Positions 1,145 to 44,856 of a DNA stretch of 64,000 bases are shown piece after piece; the first letter of the stretch is position 1, and each line of letters opens with the position of its first letter. The stretch is from assembly GCA_973895155.1 (NCBI GenBank), contig OZ316899.1:14573934-14637933 (forward strand). The letters are read 5' to 3'. This DNA is from Marsupella aquatica. Taxonomy: Eukaryota; Plantae; Marchantiophyta. The notes beneath the pieces were generated by a model, which was not told the origin of the DNA, did not search any database, and saw only the letters and a list, made by a program, of their open reading frames with translations. The translations under genes and the position numbers were made by a program.

Positions 1145-1148
1145 CTTG

Positions 1149-6803: not shown

Positions 6804-6805
6804 CA

Positions 6806-16997: not shown

Positions 16998-18059
16998 AAT
17001 ACCAATTTCTCCTTTAAAATAAAGGGTTAAAAAAATTAATTAGTGGGTGGGAACTTTAGCAAAGGAGTAGAGGAAGAACTTTTTTCTGTTCTGATTTTGA
17101 TTTCATAATTATATCTCTAAATAATAAAATCAAAATGGTAACTTTATTTTACTAAATGACATCTCTTCCTTTTTCTCCTGATTTGTTTTACGCTTAATAC
17201 TTAAGGAATGGCTCCCAATAATATATTTAAACGAATATGAACACAAAACATGACAACAACCTTTTTTTTTCAGAGAAGCTCTGTCCTGTTTGTCACCATC
17301 CTCGTGCCAGGGATTTGGAATTGACATTAACATAAAAAAAACCAGTAACTATGTGGGTCTAGTTGGGATTTGTTAGTAACATTGACCTTTCATTTTCCAA
17401 CTACTTTTCTATCAAATGAACTCTACCAAATTAAAGGCAAACTCTGTTTGGTGCTAAAAAATTAGTAAAGTTGTTTGATGTGATTAGGGGAAGGGGGTGG
17501 GGGTGGGGGGCAGGGGAGAATCAGGGTGTAGGGTTCTTTTACAAGAGCCCCATCCATTACAACATTGTTGAAAGTAGAAAGGGTTAACAACTTGTTGATA
17601 CTTAACTAGAGAAATTAGCTAAATAAGTTAACTGTCTGAGCAAAACTTAACCATGTTTAAGTGCTGCTGAGGTTAGACTAGTTGAGAGGGCCTGTACCTT
17701 GGAGGAACACTTCATTGTGCTGACACTAGATATCAATGGTCGAGAGTTGGAGAGTGGAGAGAGAATTCAAGAGTATTGTGTCACGGAGCTCAGGTTGTGA
17801 CTTGCCAAAGATATGGCCAATGTATGTGTTTTTATTTTGATCATGGACAAACCCTAAACTGGGTTAACCATACATCTCTAAGTCAACATACCTGTACACT
17901 GGTTCGTTCATATGTGTATATCACCACAACTAGCAATAAGAATGTCCATCCATATGCAAAAACACATTGATTCACTTCACAACCCTTCACATACCATGGA
18001 AACAGTTGTTAGAAGGCATTAATCATGTCTTTTGCAACAAACTAACCAGATAAATTTTG

Positions 18060-18520
18060 GCTGAGGTCAGATCTGCTTAGGTGAGGTTAACTTAAGGTCA
18101 ACTTAGGTAAATCAGCTTAGGTGAAATCATCTTAGGTGACATCGGCCTTATATAGAAGACATTTGTGTAAAGTGCAGCAAACTGATCACTGGTTAGCTTT
18201 GTCTATTTTATATATATTTGTACGTTGTTATTTCTCAACTTGAAGCTCTAGTGGCACTGATCTTTTACCAGAGTATACGGCTATGTCTATACTATCAGGC
18301 AATAAATTCACACCTTTTTTAGCCAATAGAAATGAAATTAAAAATGCGCAAAGCTGGACAGGTCTAATTTTTGAAGTTGCCTTAGATAGATTAGGTTGGC
18401 AAAGGCCAACTTGGCTTAGCCAAGGTTTTCTCTGATCAGATTGGCGTACGTGAGGTCAGCCCAGGTCTAATTTTCCTAGGTCCAATTGGCTTAAAGTTGG
18501 CTTAGGTAAATTGGCTTAGA
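18060..18520. repeat. Two blocks of degenerate ~15 bp GCTTAGGT-based tandem repeats
   Basis: CTTAGGTGA / CTTAGGTAAAT units at 18060-18150 and 18350-18520. Confidence 0.65.
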
Positions 18521-19436
18521 ATGCATTTGTGTCCGAATACGTATCTTATGTGGAAAGCTAACCATTCACTGGCTTTGCATTTGTTTAATTCCCAACTTTG
18601 GCCTACTAAGATTTCAACAAAATAGACCATCATGTCTATTCTGTAAGTGATATACAAATGAATTTAGACAGCACAAAAATCATATGAATGATGAAGTTGG
18701 TGGAGTCAGCTTCAGTGCACAAGGGGAATCACACTCCCGCAAGCCACTTAGTCAGAGTCCTCGTAAGAAAAGTTCCAAAGAGTTGCACACAAGGGCATCC
18801 AATAAGTTGTTACTTCAAGCCAACTAACACATAATTGAAATTTTTACATACCCACATGCCTCAAGAAGTCCAAGAAATAGCCTGTCCAAATAGGTAATTT
18901 TACTATAAATACTCTAGATATATAAAACCACACTGATCAATGAAAAGTACAGTCAAGTTTTATGACACAAGGATGCTACTATATGTGCACTTAATTCAAT
19001 GTGCCTTATGAATAACATTCATTTCAATAAAAAGTAGTTCGAGGACCCCTGAGACAGATAAACTTGAATACATTCAACAAATTGGATCAATGAAAGAACA
19101 CTCTTGCCCATCCCTTCATTCATAGTGGATATCAGAGCTACCGGTATATATATCTGCAGCTGTGGTTTAAAGGTTCCCCTACCTGCAAGACATTTGCCTA
19201 CTCCAGCTGTTAGTAGGAGGAATTGCCAAATAATGTACGCAGGATTTGTTTGTGACTTACATTAATATTCCTAGTAAATTCACCCAAAATTGGCTTGGGT
19301 GAGAGGGCAAATTGCCAGATCTCAGAGTATAAGGGTAGCCATTAGCTTTTTCATGTTATCTCAAGTCATCAAGCCAGCCATTCCCTTTGTCATCTCAAGC
19401 CATGTAAAACTTACCATCTACAACTGCAATTTCCAC

Positions 19437-19566
19437 TTGGAAACCCAACAGTTTGTTTTTACTTTATCAAATATTTATTACAAAAGTTTGGAAACCCATC
19501 AGTTTGTTTTTACCTCACCAAATACTTATTACAAAACCTTGGAAGCCCAACAGTTTGTTTCTACTT
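19437..19566. repeat. ~52 bp tandem repeat, about 2.5 copies
   Basis: TTGGAA(A/G)CCCA(A/T)CAGTTTGTTT occurs three times at regular spacing. Confidence 0.9.
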
Positions 19567-20860
19567 CCTCTAGCCGTGTCAATTAAAAAATCTTTGGAAA
19601 TTAAAAGAAAATCTAACATTTAATGCAAAACACTGATATATCTTCCAAATGTTAATTACTCTTTACCTCATTCTTTGTTTGTTTCAACTTTACTCTTCAA
19701 TTTTGTTTCATTTTTACAGTTACCGGGATTGACAGTTTTTTATTGCCTTGTCACAAACACGAACTAACTATTCCCACATGCAATAAATCTAGATGCTCCA
19801 ATTAGAAACATCCAATGACACTAAATTCTGTGTAAAGAGTGATAGCTAACAACATATTTTGTGCGGAGCACGGTTTTTGAGCTAGTCTACAACTATAATA
19901 CAGGATCCCGCCACATTTCCATCACCATTGATCATGAAAAAGAGAGCTAGCCCTCCGAAGGTCACATGCCCACCTTCCTCCCTTGAAAGGACGGTGGAAG
20001 CCCCTCATCCGCCACACAGACCTGACATCCTCAGCCCTCCATTCTAGAACAATTGTACTAGAAAGTACACTAAATATGGCTTGCCCATGGGGAATACAGG
20101 GTGCAATTATTATAATAGTACAAAACTATGCAAACGAAGATGAGGCGGAAGGTAGACAAAAATTGGCCGAGAGGAAACAAAGAAGAAGAAGAGGGGAAGC
20201 GGAATATTAACAAAAAGGACAAAATTTGAGTAAACGGAGAACAATTAAAAAGGTAGAGAAATTAAAGAAAAGACAAACTTACAACGATAAAGCACTTTCC
20301 AGAGATGAGAGGGACAGTGGCGAGAACTTGGCCAACACGGAACAAAAGGGGGAGAGGGGAGATAGAGCCAAAATTGGACAAAATTTGAAGAAGGGGAGAA
20401 TAGATGTAGCCCTAAGTTCTCACACTAAGCCACTTACGGAGTACATAAGTGCTGCAAATCCCCTGTGGCCCTGCCTGCATTCTAGACTGCGTTTCGCTTC
20501 CAAGATCGAGGTAGCCAGGTGGCACGAAGCTCGAGACACGAACACATCGGGATCAAGGCGCCTTAGGTGGGGAGGTCGAGTGTAGGGTGCTTACGATTGC
20601 TTTCTTCCTTCTTTTGCTTCTTCGTTCCTTGCTTTAGTCCTTCTTTTGCAGACGGCAATGGAGAAGCTAGCCTCATCGGGCAAACTGTTTCTTATTTTGT
20701 GATGAGGCTGTTTTGAGAGGATGGAGTTTGCTACCATGCCTGTTTGATAACCGAAGTTCTCGATGTTACTGGAGTTGAAGTGTTTCTCATTCACACCTTT
20801 TTTAACATTTGTTTTCCTGCACACGATGAACAGCCACACGGAAGAGGTGATTTGCAGAAA

Positions 20861-21712
20861 ATGGCCGCCAGGTTGTCTTCATCGATGTTGGAGATTCACT
20901 ATGTCAGCGAGTACAATACATTCAAGGAGACCGAAACGTCATTGCGCAAGAGAGTGGCGCTTGCATTCCGACCTTCATGGGAAAGGTACGATTAATCATC
21001 CAGTTTAGTTTAAAGTTTCACCTCTCCGTAACGCGCGCGCCGGTGATAGCACATCAGGTAATATACTGTTAATATGCTGGGGTGCGCTCACTGATTTTCA
21101 TAGAATAACTGTGTTTATCTTGGTATGGATTGATGTCGTCCACCGGCTATCTACGCGCATTCTATGTTTTTCATTTCCATTTCTCTGTGTTTGTGCAGGC
21201 TTCCAGTCACCAATGACATATATTCGTGTTGTTTCCCGAGTCTAGCGATGAGCAGGTATGTGGAAGACTACCACCGCTTCCTCGCCGATCCATGCTGGAA
21301 TTGGAAGCTTGCTTCATCCACTCGGCTAGACATGAAGTTAGCTTCTATAGAGCCAACCGAGTTTGAGTTTTGGGCAGTCAAAGACAGTGAAAGGATTTGC
21401 CGAACGTGCACGCTCCGTTTTGCTGACTGTACCATAGGTGGGACACAGAAGATTTACTCTGGATTTCCAGCCGCAGTTTTATTGGAAGGAAACAGTTACA
21501 GAGATGGCGATCTTTGCTATTGCTTCAGGGAGGAACCTGACTGTCTAGTGGTTAATGAGTTGTTCTATCTGGAAACCACCAGCGGTAGGAGCGGGTTTGT
21601 TCTGTATGGCACTCACAAGTGGGCAACAGACAAAGTTGATGATTGGAAAAGAATTTCCAACATGCCTAGCAGAATTTGTGTGCACAGCATGCCTCTTCCT
21701 AATTATACCTAA
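20861..21712 (+). CDS. Putative two-exon gene of unknown function (~210 aa); C-terminal part weakly BAH-like
   Basis: Exon 20861-20985 (GAAAG|GTACG donor) joins in frame to 21199-21712 (pyrimidine tract, TGCAG|G acceptor), giving ...AFRPSWERLPVTNDIYSCC... The true start may lie further upstream. Confidence 0.5.
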
Positions 21713-22276
21713 ACACCAAGCTGTACAAGAAGTAGTTCGCTGGAGGATATGTCCCCACTAAAAGATGGACACCACTGAATGTACATAATAAAAAGTGTTT
21801 CATTTGATTGAAAGCAAAAGTCGTCACCACCTTGTAAATGGAGTGGCAGGTGAATACGCATGTCATTCAGTGCTCCCCCCTCTCCCCCCGGCTTCACAAA
21901 ATCCTGTAGCCTTTTAGTCTGAATGTAGGCTACACCGATTGGAAGATGGTTTTGTAGAATGCTATGTTTAAACTGCAGTCTCGGGTGATTAGGCATGTCA
22001 TTGTGTGCTTCACCTTATTAATCCGAATGTAGGCTATTAGTCCGACGTAGGCTTTTAGTCCGAATGTGGAGAGCCAAATTTGACTGATTGCCGGCATTTC
22101 ACTAGTCGGCAACCCTCTACAAAAGAGTCCTATTTATGTCGGGTTTGCCAATGGGATTCGAATGGATCTCGCACAATTTTTTAAAATGATGTGTCCGGGA
22201 AGGAAAGTTCCCGTCAGTTTTATAAATATTCTACCATAAGAGTCGTGTACATAATTGAAAGGCAGGACTTATACGT

Positions 22277-23595
22277 CAATAAAGTCATCCATAAATTAAG
22301 TAACTCCAACGGCAATCATAGCTACTGGGTTAAGAGTAAATGCAGTGTACCAAACCAGGATAGACGACTCCGAACGTAAATCCACGACAAGTACAGTAAC
22401 ATTGCAAACCAACTACAAAGGAAACTTACTATTTAGGGCCAAAATGTTATCCCGAAGAGGAGGTCGCTAGAGTTTGCGTTGGCTCGCACTCGTGACTCCG
22501 GATCGCCTACTGGATGTAGCTGCGTATCCAGGTTACGAGCAAGTGTGGGAAGAGCTGTGCTTTACTGAATAGAGGGCAAGAAGTACCTCTGGCCTGCGGC
22601 ATTCCAATGCATCTTGAGAAGCTATGGAGATTTTATGGACGCCGGTGGGTGGGGAAGAATTGATTGAGAAGCGATGAGAAGTGCACGAGAGAATTGTTGT
22701 GTGGTTTGGTGGAATGCAATTGTGATTTTGGGTTGATTGGCATACAATGCATCGTAGACCCTATGTTGCAGGCATGAGAAGCTAGGAGATTTTATGGGCT
22801 CTGGTGGGGAAGAATTGAATGAGAAGTGATGAGAAGTGGAGACGGGAGGAATTAATTGTGGTTGGGAGGGATGGCATGGGAAGTCGTCGCACGAAGGGAT
22901 GGAAGAACCCAATGAAGGCATCAACAATGGCAATAGGTTTCGCAAAGTCTATAGGCATTCTATACTCTTTTATTACGATCGGAAGGTCAATCTGTCATCG
23001 GCCCATAGAAGTGAGAAAGTCCACTCTAAGTCGTACTCAGCCTCGATGCATTACATTTCCTATGGCTGACCAGTGAATTGGAATTTATATGTTGTGCTAA
23101 TTGAATGTAAACCTGGTTCAATTGAAAGTCTGTTCAATTTGGAATTCTAATTACGGTTGGAATTGAGGGCTGTTTATGTGATCGACAGGAATGCCAACCA
23201 TGAAGCAGGTTGCTCGCAATAGGGACTTGGAAGGGCACATGCAACCTGGATGTGAGTTGCCTCCGCTGATCGAGCTCACTAAACTGATTGAAAGCAGAAT
23301 CCCCTGACAACAGCTACAACAACTTTCACTCACAACAACCAGGAGAGTAGTTCTCTGAACCATAGTTGTGGCTCTGAACCTGAATGGATGAAAGAGCACA
23401 ATCCAATTTAAGTGCTTCCTCCTGCACCCATGCAAGCTACGAGGCTCAAAGGAAGAGGACGTTGGTGGATTCCGTTCACTTGAGCACTCTGGTGGCTGCC
23501 TATTGTAAGGTTTTCAGTGTTTACTCCGAGGGAAGAAAGCAGAAATGATCCAAATTGGTTCCAAGTGTTATTTGGAAGAATTTTATGGTATGTTG
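22277..23595 (+). mobile_element. Degenerate copy of the left part of the Harbinger-type element, including a broken ORF1 5' end
   Basis: Colinear nucleotide similarity with ~58589-60100, e.g. ATGCCAACCATGAAGCAGGTTGCTCGCAA..GGGACTTGGAAGGGCACATGCAAC at ~23190 vs 59702. Confidence 0.93.
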
Positions 23596-23749
23596 TGCCT
23601 CGTTGGACGTCACGATGGACTGGCGATGGCGGCACTGAAAGTCCTCGCGCAGGTAGAACTCAGCAGCTTACACAACTTACACTTTTCTTTCCTATATCAA
23701 CTGACCGTGTTTATTTTATACTAAACAATTTTCCGGTAGCGCACCAGAG

Positions 23750-25585
23750 AGAAACAGCTATGGCACAAACGCGAAACCTCCAATTTTCTGGCATGATAGT
23801 TAACGGCGACCCGAACTCGCACAACAAAACTCAGCATGTATCGGGTGGTAGGTCACAAGTGCAAACACCGACACCCATGAAGGAGAGACCAAGAAGGATT
23901 GCTGAAGTTCACCGTGAACTGTCCTACGCTGCAGCACCATCCGACAGTTAGGATGAGATCCGAAACTGTCGGGGTAGACCAAAATATCATCGTTAGCAGA
24001 ATACTTCACCTACAGAAGAGAGGAATCATTCTATACACTCTGGACTTCAATCTTACACGCGACTACCTTAAACATTGATATTGAATCGATATCAAATTCC
24101 CAAAACACATTCTGATGGAAGATGGTAGTGGCCATGCCCCGGACGCCTGACTTTGACGCTAAGCCGATGAAATCTACCAGGGCTCCTGTTTGGATCGACA
24201 TGCCGCTGTTCAACCCTGCTTTTGAATATTATGCTTGCCAAGGTTGGAACTGTGCTATATATGCGCAGACACATAAATCCAGGAGTAAATTCTCTCACAT
24301 ATGAGGATGTGTTTCATGTAATATGAAGACCCGATTGAGTACATCAACATTGTGGTGCCAGGAGTGGGAAACTACCAGGTGGATGTAATAATTTACCGTC
24401 CTCTCCCGGATGCCTGCTTTGGATGCTAACAGAGTGGACATACAGAGAGAGGTCCCAACAAACCAAAGAAAGCACAAAAAGGAAACAAAAGGACAGGGAG
24501 GAGATGTCGAGGTAACCAAGGCAGTGTATCTAGGTAGACAACCGAAGATGCAGATATTCTTAAAGTGGTTACAGGGATGCCAAAAGGTAAGTCACCAGGA
24601 ATCAACGGAGTCACCATCAAGATGCTGCTAAAGGGATGGTCGTACATGGGTCCTACTTACTCTGCTGTTAATCGGGCTTACATTAACACGGAACCATGAC
24701 AACCAAAGCCACTAGCCGGAGTTATTGAACTCATGCCCAAGAGTCAGGACTTGCTACAGTTGTCAAATTAGCGACCACTCACTATGCTTACCCTCACAGA
24801 AGTTGACAGGGATGTCCGCTCTCCAGCATCCTTTTGACACTCACCAAACAACCTCTGATGGCCAGGCTCAAACAACAATTGGATGCAAGGGTCATCAATG
24901 CATTGCAACTCTGTAATGGGAGTAGTCTTTGCCACCAGCTCTTCGCTGATGACATGGGACTATTCCTCGAAGACACTGCAGAGCAATTTGTTGTTGCTCG
25001 TGAGGTGATCCAAAGGTTCAAGAACATCTTGGGAGCTATCTTGAACGTCAAAAAGTCTCAAATCATATTCCGATCTACCTGGAGAATGACATCTCCTGAC
25101 TGGCTCAAGGAAACGGGATGCAAAATTGCTAAAGAGGCAGAGATATGTATTTGCCTTGGAGGTGTAAGACTCGACCTTCACAAGATGCAAATTTCCTTCT
25201 GGGCAAGTTGAGGAAGCGTCTCCACACATGGGCGAACAGCAGCCTCATGTTTGCTGGTAGGGTGATAATGCTAAAACACATTCTCAAGGCTATCCCAACT
25301 TACCACCTTATGATACTGGCACTTTTTAAGAAAGGCCTTTTGACAAACTGGAAAAAAGGTCTCTTAGGGGGCGAACACACAAACACAGGAGCCTTCCGGA
25401 AACCACTGATTGCATGGAGAGAAAAGGATGAAGGAGGTCTTTAAGAAACAGGCTGAAGCACATAAAATGAGACATCACAAAAAGGGGATTGTCGGAGAAT
25501 GGATCTGGATGGCCTACCTCCGAGATCATTTCCAAGTGTCTTAAAACTGGAATCCATCGAAAGGAGCACAGACAATTGGTGTTGC
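23750..25585 (+). mobile_element. L1-type LINE remnant (ORF1 fragment plus RT fragment), heavily deleted
   Basis: ORF1-like TPDFDAK..APVWIDMP..RSKFSHI*GCV; ORF2-like KSPGINGVT, CHQLFADDMGLF, GAILNVKKSQI, LRKRLHTWANSSLMFAGRVIMLKHILKAIPTY. Left boundary approximate. Confidence 0.88.
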
Positions 25586-25589
25586 TCTA

Positions 25590-25691
25590 AAGCTCATTTT
25601 CATTGAAAAATGCTTCTCATTGCTCCACTAGCGCTACCAAACCAGCAATTCAATGGGATATCTTGTTCGATGTCATCCATCATATCTTCAT
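25590..25691 (-). mobile_element. Fragment of the Harbinger-type transposase 5' region (second piece of the old copy)
   Basis: AGCTCATTTTCATTGAA.AATGCTTCT.ATTGCTCCACTAGCGCT.CCAA.CCAGCAATT... matches 62102-62201. Confidence 0.9.
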
Positions 25692-25784
25692 TGAAGAATG
25701 TTCACAAATTGCATAGTGAGAGCAGAGTACCAAGAAACCATCCTCACACCCCGCCACAGACCTACAGCCCCAATGGCTCTAATC

Positions 25785-26624
25785 TTACTCGGTACTGATC
25801 CGTGACTTGCAAAGATTCTCTGCAAAGTTCGCTTCGTGAGTAAAAAACACTACGCCGAACCTAGAGCCGGACGTTATCCTCGATATTGAGTGTTGCAGAA
25901 CGGCCGACCGCATAAACACCACATCTCCAGGTTGTAATACAAATTGTAAACCAAGTTGTGGCACTTCCAAACGTCCACCCTCAAAATCACCAAACGCTAC
26001 ATTTGCAACCCAACCATCCACAGGGTCATTTGTATCTCTGTGCGGACCAGGAGCAAGTTGTGTATTTATTGCCATCCCTAAGAAACAATTTCGGGAAGTG
26101 GAATGCATATAACCGGCTGCTCCAGGAGCGAAAGCATCAAACAGTGCCTTATATGTTTCGTACATGTCACTATCGATGCATTCAAAGAGCGCTCCAATCG
26201 CCTGTGTCACCGGCGTGAACTTGTTTATGAACTCTACGATCCAATTCAACTTCTTCCCGGATCCAATGATGTGCTGCAACAAAACCCCTGGGACATGTTT
26301 GTGACCGGTGCCATGCCAAAATGCCAGATGGTGTACACCCGAGCCAAGGGGATTAGCTTGTCCCTTGAATCTGCCATTTGCAGATGCAGGTTGATTTGGC
26401 GGGTACACCTCCACAAGCTCTTCAAGAGCTTCTAATCCTTCCAACGTAGGATCTCTATTTCGGAAAGGTCTTTGAAGGGCATGTTTCAAAAAATACAACA
26501 GCGGCTTATCATTCCAATCCTTAACGATAAGACTTTCGCTCAGCCACACAGGTAGATCAGCAGTAGGGAAGAGTAGATTCTTCTGCCTAACGAGCTCGTG
26601 GACATCGATGCAGATTCGTTTTAC
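25785..26624 (-). CDS. TET/JBP-like 2-oxoglutarate/Fe(II)-dependent dioxygenase (catalytic double-stranded beta-helix domain); 5' end unresolved
   Basis: 280 codons including the stop, with no internal stops. AINTQLAPGP-HRD-TND..GWVANVAFGDFEGGRLEVPQLGLQFVLQPGDVVFMRSAVLQ-H-SISRITSGS-R-FGVVFFTH supplies the HxD, distal H and 2OG-binding R. There is no ATG at the start of the open frame, so it needs an upstream exon or is the tail of a disrupted longer ORF. Confidence 0.8.
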   Translation of the reverse strand, partial: VKRICIDVHELVRQKNLLFPTADLPVWLSESLIVKDWNDKPLLYFLKHALQRPFRNRDPTLEGLEALEELVEVYPPNQPASANGRFKGQANPLGSGVHHLAFWHGTGHKHVPGVLLQHIIGSGKKLNWIVEFINKFTPVTQAIGALFECIDSDMYETYKALFDAFAPGAAGYMHSTSRNCFLGMAINTQLAPGPHRDTNDPVDGWVANVAFGDFEGGRLEVPQLGLQFVLQPGDVVFMRSAVLQHSISRITSGSRFGVVFFTHEANFAENLCKSRISTE

Positions 26625-26704
26625 CTAAACTTTCCCAACAAAAGCTTGAATTCCCTACAAAAACTAGGATGCTCCTCCCATTCATAAGTGGCCGATTTGC
26701 CGGG

Positions 26705-27415
26705 TCATCGTGAACCTAATAATCCTCCTCGCCACTCCTTCCCTGCTTCTGTGCACTTGCAACATTTCTGCATCTGACTGTCTGCTAGGGCCCGCAAGTA
26801 CTTGTTCCTCCGCTCCACTTCTTCTGCTTCTCCGACAAGTGCATCTGGCTTCCCATTCTGCCTGTCTTCCTTTGCCTTAGGTTCAGATTCATTTGCGATG
26901 CGCAAGGTCGCAAACTGCATCACTATGTCGCCATTCCGGCTCTCGACTTCCTCCAAGGCCGCAGTCCGTTGACTCATCAGAGCACGCAACTGGCTAGCGG
27001 CCCCCTTGGGAACATCCCTCGATTCTCCATTCCGGCTATTGACTTCCTCCAAGGCCGCGGTCCGCTGACTCCTCAGATCGTCCGACTGTCTAGCGGCCAC
27101 CTCGGGAACATCACTTGGTTCCCGCTCCGACGCCTCTCTTGTCGCCTGGTGATCCTTCGTCATTTCAGTGCACACATCCATTTGCTTTGTTGAAGCAGCC
27201 TTGCAAGCATCATCAACCCGAAACGCCAGCATATCACGTTGCTTCCGGACTGCACCCAACGCCTTATCCCCCCTGGCCACCTTCTCCTTAAGCAGCAGGT
27301 TCTCAGCTGCGTACTGTCCATTTAGGATGGCAAGCTCTGCCAACTTACGTTGCAACTCGTGCTTCATCTCCTCCGTGCCACGGACATCCCTCCCGTCGGC
27401 TTCCATCTTCCGCAA
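26705..27415 (-). CDS. Coiled-coil protein with an internal 32-aa tandem duplication; possibly the N-terminal part of the dioxygenase gene
   Basis: Heptad-like MKHELQRKLAELAILNGQYAAENLLLKEKV; DVP..AA.Q...L.SQRTAALEEV.SRNG occurs twice (96 bp duplication). Confidence 0.55.
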   Translation of the reverse strand: MRKMEADGRDVRGTEEMKHELQRKLAELAILNGQYAAENLLLKEKVARGDKALGAVRKQRDMLAFRVDDACKAASTKQMDVCTEMTKDHQATREASEREPSDVPEVAARQSDDLRSQRTAALEEVNSRNGESRDVPKGAASQLRALMSQRTAALEEVESRNGDIVMQFATLRIANESEPKAKEDRQNGKPDALVGEAEEVERRNKYLRALADSQMQKCCKCTEAGKEWRGGLLGSR

Positions 27416-27674
27416 TGGCTCACCCTAAACTTAGGCCCCTACAACACAACCTTCTCATTCTTTGCTACTTAATTTGTAGAATTTTTCCTTCCAGATCCAT
27501 GGTCCCATCTCCATATCTGAAGGGAGTATCCCAACGGCAGCCACGGACAAACTCATTATTGGTCCGTACTTCATCCCTCATCTGAGCACAACTCTTGGAT
27601 GGCTCCTACTCCATCCCATAAGGCCTGGTTAATGACCGGAAATGCCAAGTGGTGAAGCCTCTACTACAGTACTC

Positions 27675-27701
27675 CTACTACTACTACTACTACTACTACT
27701 A
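27675..27701. repeat. (CTA)9 microsatellite
   Basis: Directly visible; reads (TAG)9 on the minus strand. Confidence 0.95.
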
Positions 27702-28275
27702 GGGCATCTCAAACTTGGCGCCATCGAACATGGTCATGAGCACGCTGTCGCTCATCTTGTCGGCTCCATAAGCTTCTTCCCCCATTCCTACGGAGGGGTG
27801 CAAAATCCTTCAAGACATGCCTGCAAACCGTCCCCACGCTGGAACCGTCCAGGATAACATTGCAGGTAGCGCACAAGAGCAATGCCATGCCCTCGTACTT
27901 CACCACAGACAAATATGCTCGACTTAACACATCTGGGGTGTCCACAAATTCTGAGATTGTCGCCACCCGGGGACTTTCATTACTGGGAACCGAATCACCC
28001 GAATCACCTGCTGGGACCGATGCACGACTATGGGTTGTCCCTTGGATGTGTTCTTTGGCATAATGGTTCTGCAAGCAGTCCGGTCGACAGAAGCGAGACA
28101 AGCAAGAACGGTGAGGGCACGGCCAATCACGAGCTATGGATATGCGGACTAAAGATCTCGTGCCATCAGCCTCGACGACACTGCAAATCGATTGATGAAC
28201 TACTCTCCTATGAGCGGCTCTTTGAGAAATAGTAACAAACTCCATTCCAGGACACCCATCGCACCGGAACGTCAT
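27699..28275 (-). pseudogene. Triple zinc-finger protein with a probable 1-bp frameshift near 27803-27806
   Basis: FRCDGC..F..ISQRAAHRRVVH and WPCPHRSC..RF..PDCLQNHYAKEH are C2H2 fingers. The third finger LLLCATC..VCRHVLKD(L)H is completed only if one T is removed from GATTTTGCAC. Confidence 0.65.
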
Positions 28276-28381
28276 CGTAATGTCTGCTAGAGAATGAACA
28301 GGCTGGGTAGTTATATTTGGCCAAAAATATCATTCAGCTCCAATCGAGCATGATGATATAATTGCACCCACAACCACTTTT

Positions 28382-28620
28382 TCTCGGATGAGACAAAGGG
28401 GGGCTCCAGCTTGTCATCCGAGAGCAATGGTAGACGCCAACCATTCCCTTTACACCCCGACTAGCTTGTCATCCAAGAGCTATGCCACATGACCCTTTAT
28501 ACCCCAACTAGCTTGTCATCGGAGAGCTACGGCAGACTCAACCATAATTCCCTTCATACCCCCGACTAGCTTGTCATCCGGGAGCTATGACAGACTTAAC
28601 CATCCCCACTACTATACCCA
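28382..28620. repeat. Four direct repeats (core AGCTTGTCATC.gaGAGC, ~47-58 bp period) plus one inverted core
   Basis: Cores at about 28408, 28463, 28510 and 28568; TCTCGGATGAGACAA at 28382 is a near-inverse of TTGTCATCCGAGA. Confidence 0.9.
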
Positions 28621-29657
28621 AAAAACCCAAAAACATTTGTTACCCCTAATTTTGTTGGTCATCTCTGCCCCCAAATCCTCTGTATCCTTTCACTTGTGCC
28701 CTCACGGTGTACAGGCTTTACTAACTCAAGACAATAATAGGCCCGCAAGGTACTGTAGCTTTCGATCGGCGCTCATTGGTTTATTTTAGTTAACATGTCC
28801 TGCCCGGCCAAGTGAGACGCTTCATAACCATGCCTTGGACCTGGTGATGGCAAATGCAGCTTGAGCCTGAATTACATAACTGTGCCTGGCAGCTGGCGGC
28901 AGGACTAATCAATGCAACCTATCATTTATTACCCTTGTCAGAGTCATTTGCCCTTATTTGGAAAGACTATCCATCGCAATTCAATGGGCCGACGGCTGTA
29001 CCCGTGAGTGTCATCATAATAATAAGGACCATAAACCGGCCCCCACCGTTGTTAGTGCATACAACATTATTGTATCGCTACCGTAGGGGCAGTATTGTGA
29101 ACAACAACAACAATGCTACTACTGTTGCAAGAAATTCCTTTTTGCAAACTCTCAAATACCAGGCCCATGACCGAAGGGTAGTAGTAGTAGATGAAGTGTT
29201 AAAGTAAACTGTTGAAATATTCTACGCTCGATTACGCGGATGAAAGTCATGTTTCAGATATGACTGATGACATTTTTCAAGTATTGATTAAAAACCAGGA
29301 GTTATCTTGAAGTGAGTGATACATCATGATAAAGAATTCATCTAATATCTCTCTGCATCAAAAACATGTGTAAAACTCTTCCTTTAACAACTTGTTTTGT
29401 GGTTCTCTCAGGGCCGGGGCCAAATTGACTAATTAGAGAGCGACACCAAGTTTGGAACGCACATCTTTATTGTCCTCTTTCATCTTCCAATTTTGTATCT
29501 GACATGGTAATAATTCACAACCATGTAAACAATTAATTAAAACCATGTAAACCATGTAACGTTAGAAATACTGGGCAGCGGGCAGTCACGTACTGGGTTA
29601 ATAAAGGCTAATGGCATTCATTAGCCTCGATCTTGCCTTTCGTTCTTAGTAACAATC

Positions 29658-29819
29658 AGCACATAATAGGATGTCATCATGGATTACATTCTTGAAGGTA
29701 TCATGTACCCAAACTACCCTTGCCTATGCAAAAACTAAAACCTGGTTGGGCCCGTTGGGGGGACAGAGTGTAGGCCTTGTATTTTTGTGAGGAAAGTATG
29801 CAAAGAAAAGAGCTTGGAA
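29658..29819 (+). repeat. Dispersed ~150 bp repeat, copy 2
   Basis: Homologous to 16689-16835. Confidence 0.85.
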
Positions 29820-32084
29820 TCCACTTGCCATGATATTAGGATAATGATGAGAATTTTCTTTTACTAGTATGTATTAACAAATTGAATCTTCAAACTAAGT
29901 TGCCCAAGATCAAATTACAGATAGTTATAACTAATGGCTCAATCCAAGCCATCATTTTTCTTATGGTATAATCTTGTTATTGTAGATGAGCTTTGATGTC
30001 ATTCTTATAAATTTAATTTAATGCACATAAATTTAATACAAATTTACAACACTACTTTGAATGTACTTTGGCTATATAAAAGAATTGAGTTTGGACCCAC
30101 ATACTAGTTCAGCACCTTGGAAAGAGTGTCACAGGTGACCCATCTCTCACCCATAGGAAAACAGAAATTAAAAAAGAGAAAGAAGAAAAAAGAAGAAAAA
30201 AACAAACACATTGAAAGTGAGTTAGGAAAGAATAAAGATAGAGGGAGCCATTGATGATAGTATACTGTATAATTCTATACCTAACAAGAACTAACGAGTG
30301 TTTGTAGACGGTACCCAAATAGTATGCGCAGAATAGTATGCGGAGAAACTTAAAGTTCTACGGTAGTACAGTAGTTCAGCCAATGGTCAATAAGAATAAT
30401 TACTCCTCCAGTTGCACTCTGGCCTCCTTCTCCACTCTATGACTCTACAGAGTACATACTCTCCGTGGTTCAACGGGCCAACGGGTTTTTGTGCATCTCC
30501 AGAATCTCTATTCCGTGCATCATATACTGCCATTTCCCACCCTAAATCATAAATTCATGGGGTTCCGTGCAATTCGTACCCTAAACCCCAGGATAATAAT
30601 TATCCGAGTCAGCGCACCAGTCCGACTCCGCCTGGGTTGTTTTAGTATATACAAACATGCTATCATGGTTTTCGTATATTCCCACCCTGGTAACTTTGTT
30701 AAATTTAACTTCTTTATGTGAAACCCTGACGGATTTGTAAATACAAAGATAAAACCACGCGAGTATTATCAGTTTCACCATCTTCAGTGCCAAAGTAATT
30801 CAGAGTTGGTGTTTCTCATGTGGATGCATGAGAAACGAAAAAAGACAATCAAAACCAGGATGGAAGCTTCGAGTTGGTGAAGAACCGGCAAGCTTGAACG
30901 ACTTTTCATATCCAGGAGGTTCGAATGTGTGTTTCTAGCATTGCCGTGTGGTTATGTTGAATGTTGTTTTACATTGCAAGTAATAGTATTGTTGCTAGTT
31001 TTGAATTAATTAAGGGCGATTAAGGGCAACATTTAGGGTAACTAATTATTAACGCAGATAAGGTGTGACATTAACCTGGCCTGTCATCGAAAATGGGTTT
31101 GCACGGTCACAATAGGATGAACTGGAAATTAAGAACAAGTATCAAAGCACTTATGTCAACAATGGGAGTGTATTGTTGGACGGTAATGGACGAGCGTGGC
31201 TGGATTTAGGGTTTAGACCAAGAACTAGAATTTTTCAGAATCTTAAAATTAATCATGACTTTATATGCAAAATAATGCGCAACCTTCTTAACCCTAAACC
31301 CTAAACTTCAACTTACGTTTCCATGATACTAGATTATTCTTCGAATTTTTGTTGCAAATACCTATGATAGATAAATTATATTGGATTCATGTAAGAGAGC
31401 ATACCGAATTTCATTTCATTCTTTTTATGTGGGAAAAATTTAAGAACTACAGGGTAAAGATCATTCCTATGATCATTCGTTTACAGTAGTTTCAAATAGC
31501 AAATACAAGGTAAATAATATTTTATTGATGTCTTACGTGCATGATACTTGCAAAGTAATGCAAGTCTCATGCATAGTGATTTAGGGACATTGGCACATCT
31601 CAAATATGATTTTCTTGCCATTTTAGATTCTAGCGAGCGCTACCAAGTGTAGGACACTGGGAATATGAAAAACTGGCACATTGGGCACATGTAAACATGA
31701 TTTGCTTCCTTACAATAATCATTTTACTACAGAATAGTACTCGTGTAATTTAGTTGAGCCTCCGCGATAGACCCTCTCGGTCACGGGCCTGGTTGATGAC
31801 TTGATAATGTCCTTGTTCATGATTGATGAGGATCCCTTGCGATTCAATGGGCTGGCGCCTGTACTGCATATGGTTCATTAACGACATACTGAGCTAGTTG
31901 GCACCCACGGACCCACCATAACCAGTGGAATAGTGGATGCGTGATTCGGTGATTGTACACCTACCGTCGCGGAGAACAACTTACTGTGAACCTTTCAAGA
32001 CCTACTCTGAAATAGATGAATAGATGAATGTACAACACAATAATCCGGTAATTTTCCCTCTAAAACACTAGAATTATTGGAGGT

Positions 32085-32255
32085 TTATGCTTAATAAACC
32101 CCCTTTGGACTGTTTCTTGCTTAATCGACACCCTATGTTCCAATCTGCCCCAATCGACCCCCTATGTTCAAATCTGCCCCAACCGACCCCCTATGTTCAA
32201 ATCTGCCCCAATCGACCCCCCAAAGTATGTTTGTTACACAATCAACACCCTTTGA
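32085..32255. repeat. ~28 bp tandem repeat (AATCGACCCCCTATGTTCAAATCTGCCCC-like), resembling the internal repeats of plant MULE/MITE TIRs
   Basis: Three near-perfect units plus degenerate flanking units; a similar motif run lies at ~15075-15150. The MULE assignment is inference. Confidence 0.75.
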
Positions 32256-32499
32256 TAGTTTATGGTTCATGACATGATAAAGTGTATTGCAATTGCACTC
32301 TACCTGAACCTGTCCGTGGGTGCAAGCGACTTGACCAAACCGTCAAATGCTTCATTTAGAGTCGGTCTCGCCATGACGGGACGATCAAGGATTTCAAGAA
32401 TTGATGTGAAGACAAAATGTGTTATGTATTGAGATGTTCATTATTGAATTAGCCTCATATAACTTGGTCCAAATGTTCATTGTTTCACATTCTGTCACG

Positions 32500-33540
32500 A
32501 TGACTTCTGTTTGTCATGAGGTTTTGGGGGAATCTATTGTATTGAGGATGCATGATCCGTACCGAGGATCCCTCTCCTGCTCCTGAATCTTTCGTAAAGA
32601 ATTATCCCTCGCTCCTTGATTCAATATCAAGTGATTTTTCTTCTCACTATCTACTCCTTCAAAGCATCCACTGGCTGAGTGCGTTGGTGAAAAGCAATGT
32701 GAGCACCGAGGTTGCTTATCAATAGTATCGAACTCGATATAACCTTCTCGATCGTGTCACTAAGACGAAAGACAATAGTTGATGTCCACACTCGCGGTTT
32801 AGTTTCCACTAACACAATAAACCGGTGCTTATCAACCCCATTACACAGAAATCTTTGAGTCACTTTACCAATCTTCCGAATGAACAAAAGAAGTTGATTC
32901 GCTTTAGCAATTTGAAATGTAACCAACTATTTCAATGCAATCGGATTCACCACATCAAAATTGGGCGAGAAGGCCTTTACAACCACCTGCCTATCCTCAA
33001 TCAACGGGGCTTTTGCATTCAAGTTTGCCAGGTTAGCATGTTGGACTTTATTCTTGGCTATAATCATTCAGAGGTGAAGACAAGATCGATAAGAGCCTTA
33101 ACAGTATTAACTGAATTCTAGTCAATCACAGTTACCACAAATAGTGCATTCGCAGGCGGTTCAAAAATGTCCACCCTATGTATCAAGGCTGTTGGTTGTA
33201 TAAATCAATCCACTCCTCCGCTTGCCTGGCCTGATATTCACAACATCGGTACCCTCAAAACACCGGTACCCTCAAAACACCGGTACCCTCAAAACATAGA
33301 ACCACTTTATTCTGGTTGTTGTAGCTCTTCAAAAACCCCAGGTGCTACAGAGCCCTGAATAAACTCTGAATGTAACGGAGTGGTAGAGGTTGTCTCCAAC
33401 CGTTTGCTCCAATTCCCCCATTCCAACGTTCCTTCACCTCCTCTATCCACCCTTGATTAACGTCTTCCCGATTCGACTCACTGAAATTGAAGTAATAAGA
33501 AGGCTTGTGAACATGTGATGCTGTTGTAGTCTCCATCCAT
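32500..33540 (-). mobile_element. L1 LINE ORF1 (DUF4283-like) remnant
   Basis: APLIEDRQVVVKAFSPNFDVVNPIALK*LVTFQI....FIRKIGKV resembles the plant L1 ORF1 pattern; many stops. Boundaries approximate. Confidence 0.55.
33247..33298. repeat. 17 bp near-perfect tandem repeat x3
   Basis: CGGTACCCTCAAAACA(C/T) three times. Confidence 0.95.
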
Positions 33541-33998
33541 CTAAGTCCCGCGGTTTAAATCTTCTCCACATCATGCTATCCCAACTCCATCACTTCATCA
33601 GATGATGAACACCGCAAATCCTCCGAACCCCCAGACCTTCAAACGCATGAATTCAAACTCATACACAGACCAAACGCTCAAGAGCCAAAGCTGTCAACAA
33701 GAGTCAAAACAGGCACAATGTAATGTAAATCCATCCGAAGAAATGCTGAAGAAAAGTCTTCCCCAACGGATAGGATCCCCCAAATAAGCCCCGCCACATT
33801 CAAAAATGTGAAACAAAATTTTCACATCCGCAACACCGAACACAGGAACTACAGTAAAATACCAACAAAGAGCACTATTCCTGAAAACAGGGAAAAACAC
33901 TCAACCGTCCAGCTCTGCCAATAAAAAATCCGCCGAAATTGGCTCGTCAACAAGACCTTGTTCCACAATAATTATTTTGATGAGACGCTTTTATTTGG

Positions 33999-34681
33999 TT
34001 TAGGGTGTGTGAATCAGTTTGGGGTTTGAAAAGTGTCCCGAAAGTAGAAAATACGCCAGGAACAACCCCGGTGGATGCACGCCGAAGGACAGCCACTCAC
34101 ACGACAGTAGCGTAGAGAAAACCGGACAAAACATAAATAACACAAAAAATTGACAATCTGTGCTTCCCAGCAGTTCATTTCCTATCCCTATACTTCTGCG
34201 TCACACTTTCCGACAAGGTGGATTCGAACGTCGTGGGAGGATATGCATTCGGATCAATGTGTCCTACGAAAATCGGATACCAAACTGATAGTCCGGATGA
34301 CGTCGTTCAGTTTCTTTGGGGTACATATGTGATGTGATGAAATTTCTTCATGTCATCATTTGGGCATGGCAGTCATTGGGGAGGTAGCTCACACATTGTT
34401 TTTGGCAGATCCTAAACTGAAACACCTAACTCCAAACATGAAACTTCCGAACACATCGTGCATGCCATAAACTGTGCAAATGCTGGACTGGCCAATAACC
34501 TGGCCGATATCCTGTGATTGTGGACCGTTACAAAAAGATGGATTGCTCTCTGCTTTCATTCAATTTAGGGTGTGTGAATCACATCAGTTCTGAAGACTGT
34601 CCGAAAAGTAAAAAATGTGCCAGAAAAAACCCTGAAGGATGCGCCAGAGGGCAGCCACTCACACACAACAGTAGTGTAGAG
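33999..34681 (+). repeat. Pair of ~120 bp diverged direct repeats (33999-34117 and 34564-34681)
   Basis: TTTAGGGTGTGTGAATCA...AAAGTA.AAAAT..GCCAG...CAGCCACTCACAC..CAGTAG.GTAGAG in both. Confidence 0.85.
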
Positions 34682-34857
34682 CAAACATACGCTTCTATGA
34701 ACCAAGTACAGAGCTGAGCCCCGTCACTGGCGTCTTGGAGACAGTCTGTCTGTCGTCAAGTTCAGATTCTCCTAAGTTACCCTAAACCCAAAAGCGTGTG
34801 TTCAATCCTCGGACGACTTGTTGTCGGACTCGAAGAGATTACCGTAAACACCCAAAT

Positions 34858-35587
34858 TTACGTGCCCTGCCGCTCTAGCTCATGATTGGCTATGGTCGCT
34901 TTGGCCCTTCGCAATTCTGCCCGTACAGCCGCCAAACTCAACGCCGTCGGAAGATGGCTTGGAGGGGCTACTGCCTTACACTTCTGGCTCCTCCCCCCTG
35001 ATGCCGTCACAGGCTCGGAAGTCCTAAACTCCACCTCAGGAGGCTGGCCCACCGATGGTCCCACCGAAGTGGGTGTGGCCATGTTTTGTAGGTCGAGGAC
35101 GGATACAGTGGTGGTGGGTGTAGCCATCGCCGGGCTGCGGGATGGGAAATTGGTCCCTGGGGGGCTCAGAGCATCCGAGTCGGAGCTCATCCGTGTCTGA
35201 GCTCACCTCAGCTGTGTTCACCTCCGCAACCACACGGCACTGAGGTGCGGATGCTACAATCCGCGTCCAAGGTTCAGGCCCAAACCTCGGTCCCTGGGAG
35301 ATGGTGCTTGAACTCCTCGCCACTAATAATGGATTTGGGGTGGAGCAAAGCCCTCCATCGCAATAGAGGCTCCAATACCTCGCCTCTTGGGAGACGCCGT
35401 GAGCCTCCCTGATGCTTTGTGAGCCTCCCTGTTGGCTATCCCAATTAATTCTTTTGTCACGGCGCTCTTCTGCTGCTTGCAAGTTGAGTTTTGTGTTGAC
35501 CAGGCGGGGAATGTCATCGAAAGATTCCCGATGATGATGATTTGGTGGAGAATAGATGTGGAGGCGTGGAATGGGGGGAAGGTACAC
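34858..35587 (-). pseudogene. Fragmentary TE-accessory ORF (INW motif, Ser/Pro-rich linker, coiled-coil start)
   Basis: DKRINWD motif, then a low-complexity linker and LAAVRAELRRAKATIANHELE; layout similar to 37396-39771. Confidence 0.3.
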
Positions 35588-37395
35588 TTATTCACTTTGG
35601 CATGGTATTGTTGAGAAAAATGGGAGACATACATCTATTTTGGCATGACATGAATGCAAGGACATTAGTTCTCATTTTTGAATAGGTTAGAACAGTCAAG
35701 CATTGGAATGTACTCAAAAAGTCAGTGTCATCCTCAAAACTCAACCGGAACCCAAACATGGGGCTGGCCTGAAACTGTGATGGGACCCAAAAATGGGGAG
35801 ATCATTCCGGTGGGATGCGGGGGAAAATCCAGGTCCATATTTGAAAGACAAAGCAGGGAAGCGTCTCCCTGAATAAGTCAAGTGACGAAGATTTGCGACT
35901 ACTACTGCTGTAGATCATAGCCCATTAGCACTGGACGGCTGGACCCTGTTCGCGGTTTTTTAACTACTGACACGTACAGTGCGTAGTAAAGGGACGTCCA
36001 ACTGTGCAATAATGATAGCAACACAGCCGGAATCGGCACAGTAACTATGACTATTCCACATTATTATTAGCACGCCCAAGCTTGTCGTCTGGATTACGCG
36101 GGCTGGATTGCATTTCCCTGTCAACGTAAATGCACCGTGCTCATACACCCGCCACCGTCCACCCTGAACGGGACGTATACAGTGGGTACCCACTGTATAC
36201 CATAAAGTGACCAGGGGTATCCCATAAAGTGACCAGGGGTATCCCTTTTACAGGATATAAACGTTTAGCCGTTTAGGGTATGTGGGGAGACCTACATATA
36301 TACGGGAGACTTTGTATCCCATAAAGGCATAAACCCAGGTATTTTAGCTGTTCCTTAAGGAAGGAAACACTGATTAAACAGACTTTAGCAAGACCAAAAT
36401 GCATCGTGACCGTCCGTTCAGATCTGAAGTTGTAACTTGCACGGCGCATACCCCGAGGAAAAAAGCTTAAAGACCGTATGTATACATACAATCTATTTTT
36501 AATGAAATATAATCAAGGCCAAAAAGGCTAATGTGGCAGCAGCCTAAAGCACCTAAAAATGGAATATAACATTGACGACCTTAACGGACCTCTAACCTGT
36601 ATACCTGGGCTACTGGTAGAGGGAAAGAATGGGGCGCCTCAGATGCCGGGTTCAAAACTCGCCCCAAGCTTTTGAATACACATCCTCCCCAAAAGTGGGG
36701 TTCGGAGGACCCTCTGATTACACATATAGCTTTTTTTTGGTTCCAGCAGAATTTACACAGTGATCCCCAAAGAATGGGGTCCAGACGCCTCTAGTGACAC
36801 TTAGTACTTTTTTTGATTCCAGACGCGAACCGGCTGTAGAGGTTACAGGTCAATAATCACTTACTCCAAAGGAGCTACAGAACACGTTACTTGTACAAGT
36901 AAATTGGAAACCCTCATCCTCATCACCTGACATACTATTCATCCCCATCACACACGCACTGCACTCTATTCATCATAATATATTTGTCTAGTCATAACCA
37001 ACGCGCAAAATAACATCTCATTAATGTATGGCAAATGAAAACAAAGACTGAGGTTTTTATTTCCAAACCATATTCGAATCATAGAGGCAACGGGAAAATC
37101 GCCTGATTCTTGCGAGTACATACATCATTCTACAAAAAGAAGTGACCTACATGGTCGAGAAGTTGCACAATTACAAAAGTGTAGGACTCACTGGTATAGC
37201 ACTCTGACGTCCCACAAGGAGTATGTGTGGAAAGCGTGATCCGGAAGGACACACCGAGGAAAACTAAACTCTTGTAACTATGAGGAATGAACTACATAAG
37301 TACAGTACAGTCATATAAAACTACATGAAAATATGTCTGGATGCAAAAAAATGTTGAATGCGAGTAGAAACCAGAGCATGAAGATTGCCATGGAA

Positions 37396-42769: not shown

Positions 42770-44856
42770 ATGTCAAGCAGAAAGAGGTCTCGTGCGGAGA
42801 CTACTCGAAACACTGCATTTATCGATGGCTCGAAAACCGTTACAATAGCGGCAGAGGCCAACATTCGGAACTCGCAAACGGACACAGCTTACATTACTCA
42901 ATTTGAGAGCATCTTCTGGCATGCCAAATGCCTGGGTATGGTTCGAATGGGTTGCGATCTGACCTTGGCAGAGGCTGCATATTATCATCGGAATATACGA
43001 TCAGTCTATGGCGATGCGGCGTCACTGTGCATCGAGTACGATAGGACACCGCTTATTAGGGTGCTCAACCAAGAATTGGCCAACATGTTTGGGATTCCAG
43101 GTTTAGTTCCATCGCAGCTCCCGACAAGAGTGAAGTGCACAGCTTACACTCCACGGCAGATTATTGGCTTTTTGAGGTCAGACCGTGACTTGAGATCCTC
43201 GATCCGTGCCGGGAAGATCCAATACGGGACGGTGACAAATCTGGAGGTCCGCAAGTATATAGAGTTGTTCACCAAATGGGTGATGATAAAATCTGGTTAC
43301 CATCATGGGACATTGACCATATCAACATCGCCGCTCGAGTGCTCCAAGGCGAGCTCCACCCGTTGCAAGTGTGGAAGGCGGAGTTGCTTCAGAAACTCGG
43401 ATCCAAATCGGTTCCGCCTTATCCCTCACTTCTTGCTTACATCATTTGTTGGGTGCTAAACAAAAGATTGGTGAACCCGATCAGGGATGCCACCGCCATC
43501 CCTGATGTTGCACCGCAAAATCGCCAATGGCATAGGAGTCATCGGCACAACGTTGCTTACAGTCATGCGGTCGGGGAAAACCGGGGAACCAGTGAATCCA
43601 CCTTACAACATGGGACTGCAGCTAATCCGGAACAGGAAGAAGCACGCGCTGACAGTTCAGAAGGCAAAGAAGATCGTGGAGAAGAAGCCACTCTACTGGG
43701 AGCATACATTTTGCACAATTTCAGGGCGAGCAACCACGCCTTGCAATCCTCCACAGTGGAAGGCGGTTTGGAGGACGGACGGTTGGACGTGCATGTACAT
43801 AAATTGGAATTAGTAGATGCATCTCGATTGAAAGGTTTCGAACAGAGGGTAGCCGTCACTTTGGTAAACAAGGCAACAGAGTTTGCAGATAGCCCCAGCC
43901 GGAACATGGGATTTCATCAAGACGCCACAGGGTCATTGCACAAATTATCCGAAGATACATTATTACACAAGGGAACGGTACAGAGCTTGACAATCAATGG
44001 CACGGCTTTGGAACAGAGGTCAGACAAATTGGGGCCGTGTGAGCCTAGAATATGTAAGCAACTAGACGTACTGAAAGAGGAAAATGCTAGGCTCCAGCAA
44101 GAGATACAGGACGAACGGAGCCAATGCTGAAAAGTAGAAGAAGAAGTACAGGGACTGAAGAAGCAGCTCAAAATGGATTTACAACTCCTTGATGACCTCA
44201 CCCGACGTTTGCAAGAGGCAGGGAATCCCAAATTTGAGGCCAAGGAGTCCTTAATCATAGAAGCTTTGAAGGAAAGGGAAAACATGGAATTTTATCTTCA
44301 CGAGGCACTGCACAACATTGCTGGATTTGACTTGTCCACATTAAATCCATTTTCAAGAGCAGCTTATCGAGTAAAGATGGCCCTGTTTCAAGAAGAAACC
44401 AAAAAAGCTGCCAAGCTAATACAACATATGGGGCAGGAAAATCAACAACTTCGACTGGCAAATGAGACCAATCTCCGTTACCATTTGGATCAGGTGAGAC
44501 CTGTATACATCATCAATTCAATTACCATAAAACTGAACCCTAAAAACAACCACTGTAGACATGGCGTAACTGATGTGACTTTTTCAGTTTCCGGGGCTAT
44601 ATTATCCACCCACCTCCTGCAAAGCAGAGAGGGAGGGGGGATCAGCAGCGCCCATGAAAATTGGATACACGATCATGGCATGACTTCCCTATGCGGCCGA
44701 GGTTTACATTACCAATGTTTGTATGTATGGTCAGACACAACTTTCTTTCAAGAGAAACAAAGAAAATTCAAATCCGCTCCGAGATTCAATAGTGTGCATC
44801 CGAGTGAGTATGGACCCTCCATTCCCAGAGGCAAAACTGAGTGTCAATTGCCCTAA
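42770..44856 (+). pseudogene. TE-accessory protein (plant transposon protein / Athila ORF-like) with C-terminal coiled-coil
   Basis: Three consecutive ORFs joined by a frameshift (~43295) and an in-frame TGA (44128). PPYPSLLAYII resembles the LPYPSLIT motif; heptads LDVLKEENARLQQEIQ. Possible intron 44494-44587. Confidence 0.5.

Follow-up and report, generated by a model that had tools for sequence, protein, structure and literature searches.

A disrupted TET/JBP-family dioxygenase gene beside a putative helicase-gene fragment in transposon-rich DNA of the liverwort Marsupella aquatica

Results

The locus considered here lies within a 64-kb stretch of the genome of the liverwort Marsupella aquatica (64,000 nucleotides, positions 14,573,934 to 14,637,933 of contig OZ316899.1, assembly GCA_973895155.1; hereafter the window), and consists of three neighboring open reading frames (ORFs) which suggest zinc fingers, a coiled coil and a TET/JBP-like dioxygenase, respectively. 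An earlier note on this DNA proposed that the three constitute a mobile DNA-modification cassette of fungal type. ORF listing and translation place all three on the minus strand, co-oriented as that note had described, at 25785-26624, 26705-27415 and 27709-28275, and the repeat array that it had placed on their 5' side is likewise present. The features of the locus, in window coordinates, are as follows.

25785-26624, minus strand: main TET/JBP dioxygenase frame, 279 codons plus stop (the ORF at 25785-26549 remains open back to 26624)
26625-26704, minus strand: conserved TET N-terminal segment, from three-frame translation, colinear with six full-length homologues at their N-termini
26624-26626, minus strand: frameshift site, GG in the window versus GGG in a diverged copy from run X3
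26705-26707, minus strand: TGA stop codon, in frame, dividing the coiled-coil ORF from the conserved TET N-terminal segment
26708-27415, minus strand: coiled-coil (helical) ORF, 236 codons, first ATG at 27406
26928-27119, minus strand: tandem duplication within the coiled-coil ORF, 96 nt (32 codons), in frame, 82% identical
27661-27701, no strand: CTA/TAG trinucleotide microsatellite separating the zinc-finger fragment from the coiled-coil ORF; contigs of public runs are cut there
27709-28275, minus strand: zinc-finger ORF, a putative 3'-truncated helicase-gene fragment by phmmer and contig evidence
28400-28620, no strand: array of four tandem 55-58-nt units within a higher-copy repeat (high contig depth), at 125-345 nt upstream from the zinc-finger ATG

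Judged by its sequence and its modelled fold, the dioxygenase frame is a genuine member of the TET/JBP family, and not an AlkB- or P4H-type enzyme. The 279-codon frame matches Pfam PF12851 (Tet_JBP) with an E-value of 1.1e-11 and 44.7 bits, against a gathering cut-off of 34.9, over profile positions 32-164 of 164. The predicted Fe(II) triad of H195 and D197 (26042-26034) and H245 (25892-25890), together with the 2-oxoglutarate-binding arginine R255 (25862-25860), falls in invariant alignment columns and aligns with NgTet1. A profile made from the window frame and its six homologues, to which the frame is 45-51% identical (P0001-P0006), retrieved NgTet1 at 2e-9 and CcTet at 3e-3. Furthermore, when a low-confidence AlphaFold model (predicted local distance difference test score, pLDDT, 58.7; predicted template-modelling score, pTM, 0.65) built from the seven-sequence alignment was submitted to Foldseek, all 16 matches with E<=1e-3 were to CcTet or NgTet1; the next match had E>1, and none came from AlkB or P4H. 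The TET/JBP assignment of the earlier note, set against these two families, is thus borne out by Pfam, by profile and by fold comparison. NgTet1 (Naegleria gruberi, PDB 4lt5/5cg8) and CcTet (Coprinopsis cinerea, PDB 7vpn/8jkk) are, like the window protein, small single-domain TET/JBP enzymes, and the HxD...H triad and arginine of NgTet1 align with those of the window protein in the profile match. They are the sole significant fold matches of the window model, yet share with it only 14-18% identity in structural alignments; the window protein departs from them in its family-specific N-terminal region of ~130 residues, possibly in a coiled-coil extension as well, and in being disrupted in this copy.

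The nature of that disruption emerges from comparison with the homologues, which are single ORFs of 320-345 residues in which ~60-75 residues precede the point where the window frame opens. For the alignment, a read-through sequence was made with X at the breaks, and the coiled-coil and TET parts were searched separately. Across the break, a window segment of 27 codons (26625-26704, motif YEWEE...F.REF...GKFR) is colinear with all six homologues, and it stands in a frame that differs from the main TET ORF and equals that of the coiled-coil ORF; therefore one nucleotide would appear to have been lost at 26624-26626. The only separation between the coiled-coil ORF and this N-terminal segment is a TGA at 26707-26705. 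A CGA precedes it, so that it may plausibly have arisen by a CGA-to-TGA change at a CpG. The TET frame itself has no ATG before residue 154. An intron bridging the TGA or the frameshift was considered and rejected: no AG acceptor follows the TGA ahead of the conserved motif, the homologues are colinear, and a 1-nt deletion fits better. There is also no in-frame ATG after the TGA. What the assembly holds is therefore not a complete translatable gene, given the frameshift at 26624-26626, the TGA at 26707-26705 and the lack of a usable ATG, and as assembled it cannot, from its sequence, yield an enzyme; this TET copy is disabled. The earlier note had described the dioxygenase as intact in its HRD..H..R signature, which is true of the catalytic residues but not of the reading frame that carries them.

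The helical ORF upstream is rich in A/E/R/L/K, and single-sequence AlphaFold2 prediction renders it almost wholly alpha-helical, in four long helices (pLDDT 68), which agrees with the coiled-coil label that it had been given. Its frame is shared with the TET N-terminal segment, and we read the two ORFs as having probably been one ancestral coiled-coil-TET gene that has since suffered two lesions. As the frames would coincide by chance in one case out of three, this reading is probable but unproven.

The zinc-finger ORF appears to have a separate derivation. Three Cys/His motifs are present, and to this extent the triple zinc finger described in the earlier note stands, but the zf-C2H2 Pfam match is sub-threshold (E 0.067), and Cys63 and Cys67 of the window are Arg codons in other copies, the difference being C-to-T at CpG within a conserved R-x-D-R-L-Q motif. 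A phmmer search returned 13 relatives, the best being the annotated Calypogeia fissa protein CAM6126956.1 (P0059; E 2e-32), which in its own genome is directly followed by a 1344-residue DEAD/Helicase_C ORF; a protein identical to the window ORF was not found in the collection searched. A further relative, P0060, is 1654 residues in length and carries OrsD, DEAD and Helicase_C domains (E 2e-13; 37% over 147 residues by tblastn). When the window was searched by tblastn with P0060 and with the helicase of a metagenomic locus described below (L014), only the N-terminus matched and no helicase core was found. The ORF thus corresponds to the first ~177 codons of such a gene, with no OrsD domain proper. 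Contigs of public runs break at 27743/27744 in both directions, and beyond the break the sequence of other copies stays in the same reading frame. The copy numbers of the two sides also differ, with at least six contig variants in organism A over the zinc-finger region versus about two over TET. On account of its homologues, the contig break, its own copy number, the continuation of the frame and the Arg-to-Cys changes at CpG, the ORF is best described, from its sequence, as a decaying, 3'-truncated N-terminal fragment of a multi-copy telomere-linked-helicase-like gene.

Telomere-linked helicase-type genes, which combine C2H2/OrsD zinc fingers with a superfamily 2 DEAD/Helicase_C helicase, are known from fungi. 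Their N-terminus aligns with the zinc-finger ORF; unlike them, the window fragment comprises ~177 codons without OrsD proper and without the helicase. In Calypogeia fissa (GCA_965154635.1) a helicase-like gene at L019:10001-14854 is annotated in two pieces, a 197-residue zinc-finger protein and a 1344-residue helicase, and no TET gene occurs within 10 kb of it. No tandem array similar to that of the window was found upstream of the helicase-type homologues in L018 and L019. At 28077 and 28089 the window carries T where all other copies of the zinc-finger repeat carry C, in each case at a CpG. Such changes fit a methylation-driven deamination of a silenced copy.

These observations bear directly on whether the three ORFs travel together. 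In the form proposed by the earlier note, they would make up an intact cassette of a fungal-type DNA transposon (akin to Kyakuja-Dileera-Zisupton, KDZ, or Plavaka elements) that was acquired horizontally and whose TET enzyme demethylates its own element. The proposal has precedent, as TET genes ride many fungal DNA transposons, of types PU, AG and PE (Kojima 2025, PMC12730594), and the nearest relatives of the window gene include genes in fungal-type neighborhoods. In addition, one metagenomic TET homologue (32% identity; L014-L016) is paired tail to tail with a gene for an OrsD-helicase, an arrangement that echoes the zinc-finger and TET neighbors seen here. At the locus itself, however, no plausible transposase was found among the ORFs of 17000-37000, the only candidates in the window being an unrelated long interspersed nuclear element (LINE) reverse transcriptase (RT) fragment and, 35 kb off, a Harbinger DDE ORF. 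Terminal inverted repeats were not found, the only inverted repeats around the ORFs being microsatellite matches, and a target-site duplication is likewise missing from the flanks at 25590 and 27744. Among the contigs of TET homologues examined as DNA, none places a relative of the zinc-finger or coiled-coil ORF beside TET, and thus none repeats the co-occurrence of the three ORFs; nor do the Pfam hits of genes on the contigs of close TET homologues include a transposase. Moreover, this TET copy is disrupted, the L014-L016 case is a single locus, and the zinc-finger ORF comes, in truncated form, from another repeat that differs in copy number. The three-gene mobile cassette therefore finds no support here, given the homology break at 27743/27744, the separate, higher-copy repeat in which the zinc-finger ORF lies, and the lack of transposase, terminal inverted repeat and target-site duplication; we consider it quite improbable. 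Likewise, to call the ORFs a closely packed cassette overstates their relationship, since the dioxygenase frame is broken and the zinc-finger ORF is a remnant of a larger gene.

A narrower candidate, a discrete 2.15-kb mobile unit at 25591-27743 suggested by the contig breaks, is not supported either, as a 101-nt fragment of a Harbinger-like repeat accounts for the break at 25591.

Compared with the fungal TET transposons, the window resembles them in having a TET/JBP gene in repeat-rich DNA, and differs from them in its lack of a transposase, terminal inverted repeats or target-site duplication, in the lack of a transposase beside the close homologues and in its liverwort host. The fungal PE type is marked by HxE, whereas the motif in the window is HxD (HRD) (PMC12730594). 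In Kojima (2025, PMC12730594) and in the papers citing Iyer et al. 2014, fungi are the only hosts for which TET-carrying transposons are described.

The preferred explanation, that of an ancestral coiled-coil-TET gene since broken, raises the matter of when it was broken, and here a second alternative has to be weighed, that of a functional host gene present in few copies in this liverwort lineage. Its frameshift would be a private mutation or stem from faulty assembly, and its TGA would be polymorphic, bypassed by readthrough or avoided by splicing. The coding sequence is otherwise in good order. Of 85 columns invariant in the six homologues, the window retains 75, in a range comparable to that of the divergent full-length homologues P0001 and P0006 (81-83%); among the differences from related runs in the TET ORF, three of the four with the best support are synonymous third-position changes; and the observed/expected CpG ratio, at 0.82-0.85 in the gene versus 0.64 for the window, indicates less depletion than in the flanks. 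Because so little decay is seen elsewhere in the coding sequence, the lesions are probably recent, strain-private or in part assembly errors.

Public sequencing runs speak to the same issue. Parts of 24500-29500 are covered by five runs from three studies, of organisms coded A, B and C, all represented by Logan contigs only. In organism A, a contig at 26173-27638 (98.7% identity) joins the N-terminal half of TET to the helical ORF, and another, from run X2, at 25367-26003 connects the 3' end of TET with its local flank; contigs of organism B at 25892-26191, 26517-27035 and 27051-27642 show 96-98.6% identity. The coiled-coil ORF and TET are physically linked in contigs of both organisms, at ~98-99% identity. 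One near-identical contig in each organism carries one extra letter (X2 record 11 in organism A, 1467 letters on 1466; X3 record 19 in organism B, 520 on 519). In a diverged organism B contig (X3), the match ends at 26624, the next 30 letters fit only with a 1-nt offset (21/30 versus 5/30), and the contig then reads through the frameshift site in a single frame. The frameshift is therefore absent from at least one copy, and related organisms appear, from these contigs, to have copies of this kind.

Taken with the low copy number of ~1-2, these features would be expected of a working host gene. Set against them, the TGA stands in the assembly, with neither an acceptor before the conserved motif nor an in-frame ATG to circumvent it; none of the runs that cover the locus is recorded as RNA; the setting is pure transposable element (TE) debris with no host gene in 64 kb; and no homologue occurs among the annotated proteins of Calypogeia fissa. 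On balance we regard a working host gene as rather unlikely, and favor a gene disabled in this copy and perhaps only lately so.

The relatives of the window gene are few. Its TET clade numbers 14 proteins among 5.8 billion (in the permitted length range), with nine loci in a metagenome scan, and its other members come from soil metagenomes, partly on fungal-type contigs. Three members adjoin typically fungal genes, namely HET, a TPR-type NLR and ankyrin; a 528-residue neighbor of the TET homologue in L002 gave no Pfam hit. The sole named relative is from the agaricomycete Schizopora paradoxa, at 33% identity. Searches for TET in a library containing the Calypogeia fissa proteome found no homologue from that liverwort. 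In a maximum-likelihood tree the window sequence groups with P0001 at 92/91 support, both on long branches, and deeper nodes are unresolved. A candidate plant clade of the window, P0001 and P0006, based on a shared deletion, was rejected, as the tree places P0006 with P0004 and P0055. A fungal link of the clade is, from these neighborhoods, plausible but unproven, and with a best identity of 51% any transfer would be old. Of the fungal-type, possibly horizontal origin suggested by the earlier note, then, the fungal-type neighborhoods of the nearest relatives offer some support, and the fungal-type mobile element, lacking transposase, terminal inverted repeats and target-site duplication, is not supported.

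Three observations on individual relatives are recorded here. At L014:3611-9723 (also L015 and L016), the 488-residue TET/JBP homologue P0058, 32% identical to the window frame, and a gene for a 1499-residue OrsD plus DEAD/Helicase_C protein are arranged tail to tail; the three cases are one locus in three metagenomes (99% identity) and not three insertions, and the pair would seem a single echo of the window neighborhood and no proof of a shared element. At L017:627-2861, the TET homologue P0006 adjoins a gene without introns that encodes an XS domain, a domain characteristic of plant factors for RNA-directed DNA methylation. Last, P0001 (L004, SRR18067352) and P0060 (L018, SRR18067536) come from neighboring run accessions, on contigs with GC contents of 38% and 52%, respectively.

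The wider surroundings of the locus are TE remains throughout the 64-kb window, with no host gene recognized; in this the TE debris reported by the earlier note was correctly seen. The following elements were delimited.

25591-25691, plus strand: Harbinger-like fragment, 101 nt, 90% identical to 62102-62201, 94 nt past the TET stop codon
22277-25450, plus strand: degenerate LINE-like element in opposite orientation to the ORFs, with an RT fragment at 24834-25211 and a second copy at 58589-60102
61091-61594: Harbinger-type DDE_Tnp_4 ORF, by Pfam hit

The ORF adjoining the last of these, at 61723-62235, is taken as part of the same Harbinger element and is the source of the 101-nt fragment near the TET stop. 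A chromovirus (a Ty3-type element with chromodomain) occupies 1-7850, its long terminal repeats at ~1-719 and 7149-7850 being 93-94% identical and its pol broken into several ORFs. Long ORFs of 227-380 residues at 37396-39771 and 42692-44856 have zero Pfam hits and may encode unclassified TE proteins, and an inverted repeat at 50437-51212 has 107-nt arms, 79% complementary, with 562 nt between them. An Rfam scan of the window matched no family, and a search of NCBIfam gave nothing useful.

The chromovirus also informs the identity of the host. Its pol ORF at 4109-5266 shares 57-70% identity with many Calypogeia fissa proteins on chromosome-scale contigs, all else being far less similar, which upholds the attribution to a land-plant genome, and the window lies >14.5 Mb into one assembled piece. 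Chromovirus affinity and deep position support a liverwort host distinct from C. fissa and argue against contamination. Were the TET segment instead the DNA of a fungal contaminant or endophyte misassembled into a plant scaffold, its closest homologues would be expected where they are indeed found, in soil metagenomes and in some cases on fungal-type contigs, and liverworts do live with fungi. Yet contigs of two organisms from separate studies join TET to the coiled-coil ORF, the X2 contig at 25367-26003 ties the TET 3' end to its flank, the window is filled with TEs that include the liverwort-like chromovirus, and the best homologue is merely 51% identical. Contamination is thus, in our estimation, very improbable, and we take the broken gene to belong to the liverwort.

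Discussion

The most likely account of the locus is that it contains a small gene, free of introns, encoding a TET/JBP-family Fe(II)/2-oxoglutarate dioxygenase, which would originally have been a single protein of ~540 residues, helical (coiled-coil) in its N-terminal part and catalytic in its C-terminal part. An intact protein of this kind would be expected to bind Fe(II) via H195, D197 and H245 and 2-oxoglutarate via R255, and, by analogy with NgTet1 and CcTet and from its family membership, to oxidize a methylated DNA base (5-methylcytosine or thymine). In the copy before us, the TGA at 26707-26705 cuts the helical part from the TET N-terminus, and the 1-nt deletion at 26624-26626 splits the TET frame. 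Upstream, the 'zinc fingers' and the tandem array would come from the 5' part of a multi-copy telomere-linked-helicase-like gene, truncated and mutated at CpG sites. As such, the three ORFs would be neither a functional nor a mobile unit, and would represent two unrelated things joined in a TE-rich chromosome interior; taken as a whole, this is an explanation that we hold to be reasonably probable.

Several points weigh against it. No relative of the coiled-coil ORF was found among the proteins gathered in this analysis, and the coiled-coil extension is absent from all TET homologues compared; the TGA could be a natural stop and the helical ORF a separate gene. The confidence of the TET model is low. 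The restored frame in the near-identical contigs follows from one extra letter of unlisted position and is to that degree presumptive, the copy number of the TET region (~two variants, at 26013 and 26055) derives from Logan contigs only, and none of the five runs noted above is recorded as RNA.

Transposon-borne TET/JBP genes in fungi were reportedly recognized by Iyer et al. in 2014. The general view is that TET-type enzymes are missing from land plants, in which glycosylases carry out DNA demethylation, and in the full-text literature searched for liverwort, Marchantia or Physcomitrella no report of a bryophyte TET/JBP gene was found. The copy described here is a relic, and the self-demethylating cassette that had been proposed is absent from this locus. 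Nonetheless, a liverwort genome holds a Pfam-recognized TET/JBP coding sequence of a rare clade, which appears to have been constrained until very recently.

It is a more speculative step, and one that we think unlikely to prove correct, to suppose that this liverwort lineage retains an active coiled-coil-TET/JBP enzyme that was anciently gained from fungi together with telomere-linked-helicase elements. If such an enzyme were active, a land plant would possess an oxidative route to modify or erase 5-methylcytosine alongside the ROS1/DME glycosylases. Should intact copies be expressed in relatives of Marsupella aquatica, it would become testable whether oxidized methylcytosine occurs in a land plant, and whether fungi and bryophytes have exchanged chromatin genes.

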